From assembly GCF_006345805.1 (NCBI RefSeq), contig NC_043002.1, positions 100,812,001 through 100,876,000 of the forward strand: a DNA stretch of 64,000 nucleotides. Reading direction: 5' to 3'. Shown here one piece after another: positions 13,244-31,580 of this stretch; the first letter of the stretch is position 1, and each line of letters opens with the position of its first letter. Below the pieces are notes generated by a model. That model made no database searches, was not told the DNA's origin, and saw only the letters and a program-made list of their open reading frames with translations. The position numbers and the translations under genes are program-made. The stretch is from Octopus sinensis (lineage: Eukaryota).

Positions 13244-13313
13244 ATGACACGACTACTTCCTTCTTGTTTGCTGATTTTGGTTGCATTGAAAGATGTTATG
13301 TCAGGAGACCCAA
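13244..13313 (+). CDS. First coding exon (signal peptide) of a predicted small secreted Cys-rich protein
   Basis: Acceptor tttgtatttccAG ends at 13237; ATG at 13244 with A at -3; encodes MTRLLPSCLLILVALKDVMSGDP+A; donor GTAAGT at 13314 (phase 1). Basic N-terminus, hydrophobic core and small residues (S-G) fit a signal peptide. The upstream acceptor implies a further 5'UTR exon that I did not locate. Confidence 0.8.
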
Positions 13314-13356
13314 GTAAGTTTCCTTTCATATATGAAAATATATTTCCTAAGCAGTC

Positions 13357-13428
13357 GGGGGTATAGCTCAGTGGGAGAGCATTCGACTGCATATCGAGGG
13401 GTCTCCGGTTCAATCCCGGCTGCCCTCC
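13357..13428 (+). tRNA. tRNA-Cys: tRNA-Cys(GCA) gene or young pseudogene
   Basis: GGGGGTA TA GCTC AGTGGGA GAGC A TTCGA CT-GCA-TA TCGAG GGGTC TCCGG TTCAATC CCGGC TGCCCTC C. Full cloverleaf, A box TAGCTCAGTGG, B box GGTTCAATCCC, T5 run about 30 nt downstream. Deviations from canonical tRNA-Cys: pyrimidine at position 37, one T-stem mismatch, C rather than U discriminator. Confidence 0.8.
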
Positions 13429-14000
13429 TCTACGGCTCGGAATTTATTCTTGAATGTTTTTCAGCGGTGGTGCTCCAGCATGGCCGCAGCCTTCGGGCTG
13501 AAACATTTTTAAGGATTTAAGGATTTAAGCACAATATGTTTACACAGATGAATATATATATATATGAATAACCACACACACTCACACACGCACATATGTA
13601 AATGAGTAACGAAGATGTACAGTTATCAACCCATTACGGCCGTTTCAAGCAACCGTTTTATTTGATTAATAAAAACATTAAAACATTTCAAAGAAGCCGT
13701 TCTTATCAGATGACCGCTTAGACTTCAAACAAAAAGGTTACAGCCACTGCTTTAAAATATTCGCAAGAATAATGGAACACAAAACATGTACAGTTTCTCT
13801 GGTAGTATGAATTTAGAAAGTAATGCATACCTTGCCAAGTGTACAATAATTTAGAGAGGGAAAGCAGCAGGAATACATGTTGATATTAAATTGTTTTGAG
13901 CGGATTATACAAACAGAACGAAGTGGCTTAATCTCAGTACCCAATTTAACGGAATCTTAAATATATATATATATATATATATATATATATATATATATAT

Positions 14001-14225
14001 CACCGTGACCGACCAGGCTATCAGATGTTGCTACACATCGCTGGTCACAATGCACTTCGCATTGTTTTAGCCTTCAAATGACGCCACCCCGCTGGCTAAG
14101 CGAGCAGGCCGACAGAAGAAAGAATGAGAGAAAGTTGTGGCGAAAGAGTACAGCAGGGATCGCCACCACCACCCTGCCGGAGCCTCGTGGATGTTTAGGT
14201 GTTTTCGCTCAATAAACACTCACAA
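14001..14225 (-). mobile_element. SINE family C, 5'-truncated
   Basis: caccgtgaccgaccaggctatcagatg...gtgttttcgctcaataaacactcacaa next to (TA)n; recognised from memory as an octopus SINE body. Confidence 0.75.
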
Positions 14226-14229
14226 GATT

Positions 14230-28976: not shown

Positions 28977-29000
28977 AAATGTGTATGTATGTATGTATGT

Positions 29001-29515
29001 ATGTCAGGTCACTTTCGAGTGCTACTGGTAACATGTAACCCAGTACTCCCTTTTGCATGGTCGGGTCGTCGGCGACTAAACCGGCAACCCCACTAAGCTC
29101 GCTTGGTGAGGAGGGTGTTTATTGGTCACCCTGCGGGATGAAAAACAAAACCCGTCAAAGGGCGGAGGAACTCTTGAGAGTCAACGGCCATCCAATAAAT
29201 GTCTTAAAGCTGTATCATGCGCGGGGACATATAAATAATCGGATTGAATACCGATCGCGCAGTTAACCATCGGGAGTGAAGGACTCCTAGCCTTTGTTAG
29301 GGCATCCTTCTAGGAGAAGGCAACTCAGGTAACTGGGATAACTCCGACATAAAACCTGCGGCTCAGTGTGTACCGATTATGTTGACTTGTTCTTCTTTTG
29401 GGATTATGGCTGCTGTTGCTTAGTGAGTGGGATTGACTCAGTGCACAGTCTTTCCTCACTTAAAAAAAATATCTTCTTGCGCAGGCATTGCACGATAACA
29501 ACATTGATTAAGCTT
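29001..29515 (+). mobile_element. RTE 5'UTR-only copy
   Basis: Collinear with the reverse complement of about 10050-10710; flanked by (ATGT)n on both sides; no ORF. Confidence 0.8.
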
Positions 29516-29599
29516 CGTGCAATGGCCATACTCAATAACGAGAGGACAGCCACCATGTATGTATGTATGTATGTATTTATTTATGCATGTATGTATAGC

Positions 29600-29808
29600 T
29601 AGATAGATAGAAATGATAAATAGATAGATAGATAGATAGATAGATAGATAGATAGACAGACAGACAGACAGACAGACAGACAGATAGATAGATAGATAGA
29701 TAGATAGATAGATAGATAGACAGACAGATAGATAGATAGATAGACAGATAGATAGATAGATAGATAGATAGATAGATAGATAGATAGATAGATAGATAGA
29801 TAGATAGA
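29600..29808. repeat. (GATA)n/(GACA)n microsatellite
   Basis: Direct reading. Confidence 0.97.
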
Positions 29809-31425
29809 AATAAGTTGAAGCAATCTTTCAACAAGTGATCACTGTTTCGCTACAATTGTTTCTGTACCAACTCTCTTTGCGACTCCAGCTTAAGCGATAA
29901 TCGAAATGGAGATTTACGTAGTAATAGCGCTTTTAGACATTAGTGTGGCACTTCATCAGACTTTCATCAATAATGCACTCTTACATTGCATGTCTTCCAA
30001 TCATTTTCTTCTTTTACTTTTTGTTTTGCTTATATCAGAGAAAATTTTTTAAAAAATATTCTCAGAACGGTCAGTCTGTACAACATCCTCACCGGTACCA
30101 AATACCATTTCAGGGGTATATAATTATTTTAATTTACCTCTAGAGATAACGTTAGGCAGACACAAGAAACGACGGACAAAACTGATTACAAAGACAACAA
30201 ATAAGTATAGTGAGAGGATATTTAGAAGAACTAAAAATTATAAGAATAATGACATTTGTGATACGTGTTGGGAGAGGATGATGTTGATAGTAGGAGAATG
30301 CCGTAAACTACTTGTTAGCAGCGGACGTATCCTGGTGGACTTAGAATGTGATATGGTGAGACATAAAAGGGAAAATGAAATCAAAAAAGGGAGAATGTTA
30401 ATGGGGTGCGTGTGCCCTGAAGAGTTAAAGCAGTAAAGTAGAATTTAGAATCGAAGACAAAGATGGCCAAGAAAGTTACAAACTCTGATCGTTTTGAACG
30501 AATATAGCTTAGGTGAATTGAAGATAAATAAAATACAGGAAATAGAGGAATAAGGAAAATATTGGAAAAATAAATTCCGAATTAATTACAGAATAGAAAG
30601 AAACTGGCGTAAAATATATAGTGTTAAGATTAAGAATTAAGAAAAGAAGATTATAATTAGTAGAAGTAAAATATTATATAAGTTATGCAATAAATTGCTA
30701 ATATTTTATTAATAGAGGAGTTGATGGGACAAAGTGAGTGATAAATGATAGTTAAGAAGGAATAAAGATAGAACAGCCCTATAAAGGGGACTGCAGAAGG
30801 ACAGGATTGGGATAAAATATAGAAAGTTAAAAATTATTAACAAAACCTACAAGTAAGTGTATATAAAAATTATAAATTATAAAAATATATTAAGAAGTGA
30901 ATAGTACGTTTAAATATTTAAAGAATAAATGTTTAGAATTATCAGAATTTAATATACCATATAAATGATGTAGTAAAATGCTAATTCTCTTGTACCAAAT
31001 TAAAGTGATCACACGTACTTTGATTGCATACAAGGTATGAAAACGATTATTTTACTTTATTCCGATTTAGGAATATGAACTCAATATAAAAAAGTGAATA
31101 ATAATTTACGTTAAATAAACATATATACCAGGATATCACTAATTGAAACGATGAGAGGGCAAAATTGTTAGCACGTCGGGCATATTCACTTATCGGAATT
31201 TTTTCTACCTTTCTGACAAGAATTTAAATTTCTCTTAGATTTTGCATTCGATCCCTTCCAGGTCGATAAAATAAGTCCCAATTAAACATTAGAGTTATTG
31301 TAATCGATTTCATAGTCCCCCTGAAATTGCTGATATTTTGCCAAAGTCTTAGACTAGTGTAGGCATAATTATGTCATAAAAATAGTTTTAATAGAATAAT
31401 TAATATATTTTCTTATCAACAACAG

Positions 31426-31580
31426 ATTGTAAGTGGGATGATGGTGGATGTGTTGCTAAAAGTACAAAATGGAGTGTCGTCAGGGCCGGCGGGTCTTGCT
31501 GGTCTTACACCTGCGACTATAAAGGAAAAACAGACGTTAGAGCCGAAAAGAAATTTCTCGGAAAATGTTCACCTCTGTGA
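31426..31580 (+). CDS. Third coding exon (Cys module 2) of the predicted secreted protein
   Basis: Acceptor tttcttatcaacaacAG (31424-31425), phase 1 start; reads (Y)CKWDDGGCVAKSTKWSVVRAGGSCWSYTCDYKGKTDVRAEKKFLGKCSPL then TGA (31578-31580). A possible donor GTGAGT at 31577 overlaps the stop, so a short further exon cannot be excluded. Confidence 0.8.

Follow-up and report, generated by a model that had tools for sequence, protein, structure and literature searches.

Three short exons in a stretch of Octopus sinensis DNA form what we take to be a genuine and intact gene for a small, secreted and disulfide-locked protein. The stretch, hereafter the window, comprises 64,000 nucleotides of the forward strand (NCBI RefSeq assembly GCF_006345805.1, contig NC_043002.1, positions 100,812,001 to 100,876,000). 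Coordinates are counted from its first letter. The gene was read from genomic sequence alone, and we put the probability of this reading at about 0.7. It adds a member to a tandemly clustered family that has not been described before and that, to date, has turned up in Octopus alone; the other members were known already as RefSeq predictions.

All three exons lie on the forward strand. Coding exon 1 (13244-13313, 70 nt) contains the start codon and the predicted signal peptide MTRLLPSCLLILVALKDVMSGDP; it runs from ATG to CCAA/gtaagt, where the slash marks the exon border, and ends in phase 1. Coding exon 2 (26104-26244, 141 nt, phase 1-1) is bordered by ttag/GTTGTC and TTCT/gtaagt and encodes module A, with Cys 1-5 (SCPGGCIDDIFFCRDFKEEWVETKSDICAKQICDKFDGKLKIKVKEF). 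Coding exon 3 (31426-31576, 151 nt, phase 1 to phase 2) follows the acceptor acag/ATTGTA and encodes module B, with Cys 6-10 (YCKWDDGGCVAKSTKWSVVRAGGSCWSYTCDYKGKTDVRAEKKFLGKCSP(L)). When the exons were spliced by script up to a TGA ending at 31580 (70, 141 and 155 nt), the resulting 366 nt contained no internal stop. The product is 121 amino acids long and its 10 Cys residues all follow the hydrophobic N-terminus. The splice borders of all three exons obey the GT-AG rule and their phases are compatible. Residues 3-15 are the sole hydrophobic stretch of the protein. The mature part has a computed mass of 11.3 kDa and a computed pI of 8.3, for a chain of ~100 amino acids.

A preliminary description of this DNA had proposed these exons, with canonical borders, matching phases and a 121-residue translation, and each of these was reproduced exactly. 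The signal peptide and the ~100-residue mature chain with 10 Cys that it described agree with the hydrophobic segment at 3-15 and with the 10 Cys of the mature part. It had also held that the gene should be given up if exons 2 and 3 matched a repeat family. In a self-comparison of the window the exons were single-copy and no repeat overlapped any of them. Within ~216 kb of other Octopus loci, the exons match only the equivalent exons of family members. A tblastn search with family exons found no second family copy inside the window. A match to CNWDDG at 13111-13149 was at chance level (E = 2.3) and was rejected as a piece of the family.

The closest relative of the window protein is XP_052825017.1, a 129-residue 'uncharacterized' protein from Octopus bimaculoides LOC128248175 (label P0001). 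Identity is 67% over 99% of the query (E = 1.4e-46), and this was the sole close relative among 5.8 billion clusters. The LOC128248175 locus (L001; chromosome CM046606.1, ~107.0 Mb) is colinear with the window from 67 bp before the ATG, across both introns, and for ~15 kb further downstream. Nucleotide identity in the colinear parts is 80-90%. A second orthologue pair from O. bimaculoides and O. sinensis shows ~86% nucleotide identity; colinearity at the same level thus identifies the window gene and LOC128248175 as orthologues. The same three splice junctions, in identical phases, appear in the RefSeq model of O. bimaculoides, and exon 2 is orthologous to L001 13774-13908. Two indels separate the coding sequences, of 3 and 6 nt, and both are in frame. 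The shared junctions, the retention of 10/10 Cys and the in-frame indels exclude a chance open reading frame and argue against a dead copy. The two genes also have in common the signal peptide, the 10-Cys framework, the Trp and Gly residues, exon lengths and phases, and a splice donor past the last Cys. Identity to paralogues is lower than to the orthologue, at ~30-38%. Module A of the window protein has two extra residues, with CPGGCI in place of the CPGC of its relatives. Intron 1 measures 12.8 kb in the window and 3.7 kb in O. bimaculoides.

For the window's own genome, the records gave no protein identical or nearly identical to this one. Hence, the annotation of that genome apparently lacks this gene. 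The gene had been called 'hidden', which is apt for O. sinensis and less so for O. bimaculoides, where the orthologue is already a RefSeq model. LOC128248175 and the paralogues are all computer-predicted and uncharacterised.

The family was delineated with a profile made from the orthologue and the window exon translations. A full HMMER scan of 1.84 billion representatives returned five further proteins (E = 1e-17 to 3e-08), and a word-indexed profile search added two more. The members are LOC128248056, LOC128248057, LOC128248060 and A0A0L8IDP9 in O. bimaculoides, and LOC115212787, LOC118763691 and LOC118763783 in O. sinensis. They are labelled P0002-P0006, P0008 and P0009, and all are annotated 'uncharacterized'. 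Neither the full HMMER scan nor two word-indexed searches gave a significant homologue outside Octopus. The only other match, P0007, is a low-complexity repeat protein and does not belong to the family. No Pfam entry, solved-structure sequence or paper was found to match the family. The earlier suggestion of an unrecognised and possibly lineage-specific family is therefore upheld: all detectable relatives are Octopus proteins of the 'uncharacterized' kind.

Family members share a signal peptide, MT[RQ]LFPFCLL, and 10 Cys, two Trp and two Gly residues are invariant. Cys residues are spaced C-x2/3-C-x5/6-C-x14-C-x4-C-x15-18-C-x6-C-x14/15-C-x4-C-x17-C. The window protein, with spacings of 3, 6, 14, 4, 15, 6, 15, 4 and 17, fits this framework. 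Like the rest of the family, it carries W six residues past Cys3 and Cys7, and CW at Cys8. Its N-terminus, MTRLLPSCLLILVAL, fits the signal MT[RQ]L[LF]P.CLL that emerges from a 7-member alignment, again on its own phase-1 exon. The exon plan is the same in all six mapped copies: exon 1 has 67-79 nt and ends in phase 1, exon 2 has 135-144 nt (phase 1-1), and exon 3 has 145-151 nt (phase 1 to 2). Exon 3 varies in length only by multiples of 3.

The O. bimaculoides copies are clustered on one chromosome, at 107.00-107.27 Mb. L001 also contains two unannotated pieces. One, at 1998-2140, is the divergent last coding exon of an upstream copy (DCRLINAVCSKIDTSYVTISDDKCWNYTCKYQGDSKIITTVEYAGLC, followed by a stop), which has Tyr where the family has its conserved Trp. 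The other, at 29414-29485, is the first exon of a downstream copy (MTRLFPFCLLIWATLKVHMTVADK/gt), beside an assembly gap. Together, the positions of the annotated copies and these pieces indicate a tandem cluster. In the window, the downstream spacer at 40388-46009 has an older copy upstream of the gene, at 4430-8840 (72-84% identity), which fits tandem duplication of gene-plus-spacer units. At the O. sinensis locus LOC118763783, the RefSeq protein P0009 begins inside module A (MCALKLC...). A full module-A exon with five Cys is present in that locus (L003 9929-10066), and the P0009 model thus looks 5'-truncated.

The protein has diverged rapidly around its Cys framework. Between the window gene and its orthologue, the whole coding sequence has a non-synonymous rate (dN) of 0.183 and a synonymous rate (dS) of 0.105, giving dN/dS 1.74. 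For the mature part the values are 0.205, 0.098 and 2.09, with 42 non-synonymous differences against 5 synonymous ones. Identity to the counterpart is 77% for exon 2, compared with 95% for the 60 nt of intron directly upstream. Of 96 aligned mature positions 33 differ, yet none of the 10 Cys has changed (hypergeometric P = 0.011). It is safe to say that the Cys/Trp/Gly scaffold is fixed and that the remainder changes at about the neutral rate or faster. Toxin-type families, namely conotoxin superfamilies, snake three-finger toxins and PLA2s, likewise form tandem clusters with conserved signal peptides and non-coding flanks. They likewise combine an invariant Cys scaffold with a mature region that changes as fast as introns or faster. 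The likeness is in mode of evolution only; sequence and fold are unrelated.

The gene had been described as having three exons. The three exons and their junctions are real; however, a fourth exon is likely, and the TGA taken as the stop lies inside a conserved 5' splice donor. In the window this donor (31577-31584, forward strand) reads CT/GTGAGTAT, beginning at 31577, and its bases 2-4 (31578-31580) are the TGA. A GT[GA]AGT(A/G)T motif is found 2-3 codons past the last Cys in 8/8 family copies examined, and its position and phase are identical in the six copies with mapped exons. In the shared phase, bases 2-4 of the donor spell TGA or TAA. In the upstream O. bimaculoides paralogue the gene's own TAA precedes the donor, and still the donor is kept. 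Hence, the conserved feature is the intron rather than the stop, and conservation of this donor in eight copies makes a fourth exon likely. The TGA at 31578-31580 serves as a stop only if this intron is retained. NCBI models differ on this point: P0001, P0002, P0003, P0004 and P0009 splice from the donor into a fourth exon, whereas P0006 and P0008 terminate at the TGA within it.

By homology to the fourth exon in the RefSeq model of O. bimaculoides, the coding part of the putative exon 4 in the window is 32975-33020 (forward strand). It would encode the tail (L)HVTKAAPKEKHGIP, followed by TAG and the 3' untranslated region (UTR). The acceptor is intact (ttttgtttcag/ACATG, exon start at 32975). 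The orthologous sequence is L001 19587-19623, where the acceptor has been kept and the tail sequence has not. The four-exon product would be 135 amino acids long, ending ...GKCSPLHVTKAAPKEKHGIP, and its stop ends at 33020. Its tail is dissimilar to that of O. bimaculoides (QVIEDTQNKTA) and is unrelated to the tails of other relatives. Whether the product has 121 or 135 residues, the mature protein is essentially the chain first described. In P0002, P0003 and P0004 the exon-4 tails contain furin/prohormone-convertase-type sites (KKRR, RQKR, RRNRR, RKTKR) right after the last Cys, which suggests that a C-terminal propeptide may be removed in those paralogues. The tails of the window gene and of its orthologue are without such a site.

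An insertion of 3.07 kb (33155-36229, unstranded), flanked by a 7-bp target-site duplication (GCTGTTT), lies within the presumptive 3' UTR. It begins 135 nt past the putative exon-4 stop, and colinearity is broken there (L001 19779/19781 against window 33154/36230). Poly(A) signals shared with O. bimaculoides lie beyond it (ATTAAA at 36559 and AATAAA at 36572). The 3' UTR of the window gene may hence be interrupted, or much longer, owing to the insertion.

Upstream of the ATG, alignment of seven family copies delimits a putative core promoter and 5' UTR (13150-13243, forward strand). A TATA-like TATATCA is located at 13150-13156, ~95 nt before the start codon, and all seven copies have the same TTTCAG 7 nt ahead of that codon. 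The ~95-bp block before the ATG, with equivalents in L001 and in four further family loci (L002, L004, L005 and L006), has been kept in 7/7 copies although the paralogue proteins share only ~30% identity. Within it, the stretch conserved across paralogues spans window ~13177-13243. L001 9934-10105 aligns with window 13177-13351 at 89.7% identity. From its sequence, the block may be promoter plus 5' UTR; alternatively, TTTCAG may be the acceptor of a non-coding 5' exon.

We used AlphaFold2 to model the O. bimaculoides orthologue P0001 from a 10-sequence family alignment. The model that was kept is all-beta, with a predicted local distance difference test score (pLDDT) of 82-93 for residues 21-100; mean pLDDT for the five models from this alignment was 75.6-77.2. 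A model from a 4-row alignment was alpha+beta with a pLDDT of 56.8. Its Foldseek matches, NTF2- or cystatin-like with template modelling (TM) scores < 0.35, carried no meaning, and it was discarded. When the predicted model from the 10-row alignment was used as the Foldseek query against the PDB, ranks 1-12 were all fibronectin type I (FnI) pairs or FnI-containing fibronectin fragments (8-9FnI, 2-3FnI, 4-5FnI), with E of 0.013-0.12 and probability of 0.97-1.00. The FnI-pair matches had target-normalised TM scores of 0.46-0.57, and the alignments spanned the whole targets, which have 87-93 residues. A loose FnI flavour had been remarked upon earlier and is consistent with these top matches.

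The two modules also resemble each other. Profile-profile alignment placed the exon-2 and exon-3 modules in register, through C-x6-W-x7/8-C-x4-C and the next strand (P = 0.0077); an earlier local run gave P = 0.076. The shared core is C-x5/6-C-x6-W-x7/8-C-x4-C, and either end of the chain carries one Cys more. We read the model as two homologous finger-like modules, one per exon, resembling an FnI pair. Shuffled extracellular modules, among them FnI, classically have one phase-1 exon each (Patthy). FnI pairs (2-3FnI, 4-5FnI, 8-9FnI) are likewise tandem, small, all-beta and disulfide-stabilised, with a conserved Trp, and likewise have one module per exon and phase-1 introns. They differ in Cys pattern: the family has C-x5/6-C-x14/15-C-x4-C and two extra Cys in the chain, and FnI has C...C-x-C...C. 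An FnI module has ~45 residues, its four Cys pair 1-3 and 2-4, and it folds into one antiparallel sheet of two strands and one of three. The FnI profile PF00039 did not match any of 7 members at E <= 10, and neither sequence nor profile searches of the PDB brought up an FnI chain. Hence, neither profile nor Cys pattern places the family among true FnI modules, and the likeness, drawn from a predicted model, is at the level of fold. FnI modules are considered to be confined to chordates, as parts of large mosaic proteins. In contrast, the window gene would encode a free-standing two-module mollusc protein. Pfam searches with the window protein and the 7 family members gave nothing relevant at E <= 10, with PSP94, fn1 and VWC all absent. 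Isolated matches to Defensin_beta, NAR2 and DUF1072 (E >= 0.25, one member each) were set aside. Matches of the whole protein or single modules to PDB sequences (a chromodomain protein, U1-C and FBXW8; E 0.04-0.5) were spurious.

Our proposal for the product runs as follows. The signal peptide would direct it to the secretory pathway, with cleavage near Ser20/Gly21. The mature chain of ~100 residues would fold into two homologous all-beta finger modules, like an FnI pair, and be held by five disulfides in all; speculatively, each module would have two and the fifth would link Cys1 to Cys10, the further Cys at the chain ends. It would act outside the cell, probably as a binding or recognition ligand, through its variable surfaces. 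FnI fingers bind partners via beta-strand addition. A fixed scaffold with a surface evolving at or above the neutral rate would be as expected for a co-evolving partner, be it prey, pathogen, mate or conspecific. For the same molecule we consider it somewhat better than an even bet that its role is that of a component of saliva or venom, a protein for reproduction or chemical communication, or an immune recognition factor. Genes of all three classes typically stand in tandem arrays and pair a conserved signal peptide with a hypervariable mature region, and furin-type RXKR sites after the last Cys in three paralogue tails point to processing in the regulated secretory pathway. Nothing discriminates among the three. 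[quoted passage not shown]

On the evolutionary side, the dN/dS values suggest that the mature region may be under positive selection. The fullest account that we can offer is of a lineage-restricted family of free-standing 'double-finger' proteins, with an FnI-like module and its own Cys framework. The fold would either have been invented independently or descend from an extremely diverged non-chordate relative. Intragenic duplication would have been followed by chromosomal amplification, and the surface would be under positive selection as a recognition ligand. This account is tentative, and taken as a whole we hold it to be rather unlikely. Several observations weigh against our main reading of the gene and its product. 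dN/dS does not exceed 1 significantly (Fisher P = 0.15), it is 0.72 in a second orthologue pair, and relaxed constraint on non-scaffold residues fits the data as well as positive selection does. The fold assignment varies with alignment depth: the alignment is shallow, and the 4-row run gave a different, low-confidence fold. Foldseek E-values are weak (0.013 or higher), Cys spacing is unlike that of FnI (C-x-C, 4 Cys per module), and no Pfam or PDB entry, FnI and VWC included, could be linked to the family by sequence. The identical-protein records of every family member consist of one genomic contig each, none of them transcript-derived. Finally, the 3-kb insertion in the 3' UTR of the window gene could alter its expression.

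As an alternative, the window gene could be an unexpressed or decaying neutral relic, with only its relatives functional. Such a relic would be compatible with dN/dS of 1.7-2.1, at or above neutral, with exons no better conserved than introns, and with the want of an identical or close protein on record for its own genome. The 3-kb insertion in the presumptive 3' UTR and the longer intron 1 could be seen in the same light. Conversely, the reading frame is open, six splice sites and the fourth-exon acceptor are all intact, and both indels are in frame. Moreover, 10/10 Cys and both Trp have been kept while 34% of the other mature residues have changed (P = 0.011), and the upstream block and signal exon are 87-90% conserved. 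We therefore regard decay as improbable and favour an intact gene. Two known classes of secreted protein invite comparison with its product. A single-domain VWC-type (SVWC/Vago-like) signalling protein is a slightly poorer prospect than decay. Subdomain 1 of VWC is FnI-like, and could on this reading account for the FnI-like matches; SVWC proteins are small, secreted, Cys-rich and found in invertebrates, and here too a conserved W follows an early Cys. However, there is no Pfam VWC match, the C-x2-C-x-C and CC-x2-C motifs are absent, and the Foldseek top 50 contains no VWC structure, the top ranks being FnI pairs. The halves of the window protein are also homologous to each other, unlike the two VWC subdomains.

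Least probable of all is a divergent beta-microseminoprotein (MSMB/PSP94). Among cephalopods, one of these is known to serve as a contact pheromone of squid egg capsules, and the resemblance extends to size (~10 kDa), secretion, 10 Cys, an all-beta build of two domains and fast evolution in both. Motifs of MSMB are C-x2-C-x-C and CC. The family's Cys spacing has neither, PF05825 was unmatched by 7 members even at E <= 10, and no MSMB structure was among the top 50 Foldseek matches in the PDB. This alternative is largely refuted, and the likeness, already suspected in the preliminary description to be superficial, is just that.

The introns had been described as filled with transposable elements. 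They do contain a short interspersed element (SINE), several dispersed repeat families, a Pif1/Helitron-like relic and a weak reverse-transcriptase fragment, but no intact transposable-element genes. The SINE lies in intron 1 (13352-13525, forward strand), 38 nt past the exon-1 donor. Its head, at 13357-13428, is tRNA-Cys(GCA)-like (ARAGORN; Rfam tRNA, 51.6 bits), and its tail is (TTTAAGGA)n. All Octopus loci fetched have many repeat copies that share the core of the SINE, and the element is missing at the orthologous O. bimaculoides site. Hence, the apparent tRNA gene is the head of a retroposon. Rfam detected nothing else in the window. Also in intron 1 is a fragment of a Pif1 helicase 2B domain (22949-23269, forward strand, E = 3.8e-11), probably a Helitron relic; its block is present in the O. 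bimaculoides intron as well. The weak reverse-transcriptase fragment is upstream of it (18533-18937, reverse strand, E = 0.0097). The long open reading frames of the window contain no transposable-element or other domains besides these two.

Further downstream, 40158-63735 is a near-perfect palindrome of 23.6 kb. Its two 11.8-kb arms are 94.7-99.6% identical, depending on the segment, and adjoin each other, with no spacer, at a (TA)n tract near 51946. Colinearity with O. bimaculoides holds for the left arm, and the palindrome occupies the site of the next family paralogue in that species. It is either a young inverted duplication or a fold-back artefact of assembly.

For the family as a whole, existing models are inconsistent: some end at the donor TGA, others continue into a fourth exon, and one, from O. 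sinensis, is cut short. The rule of the conserved donor provides a basis for correcting all of them. The size of the product, ~11 kDa, suits recombinant or synthetic work, and practical value depends wholly on finding the site of expression. The family exemplifies the taxon-restricted secreted proteins that are thought to underlie cephalopod novelties. Its fast evolution and the possibility of a finger-like fold in a non-chordate are what make it most interesting; should the FnI-like fold prove true, a finger-type module would exist outside the chordate mosaic proteins in which that fold is known.

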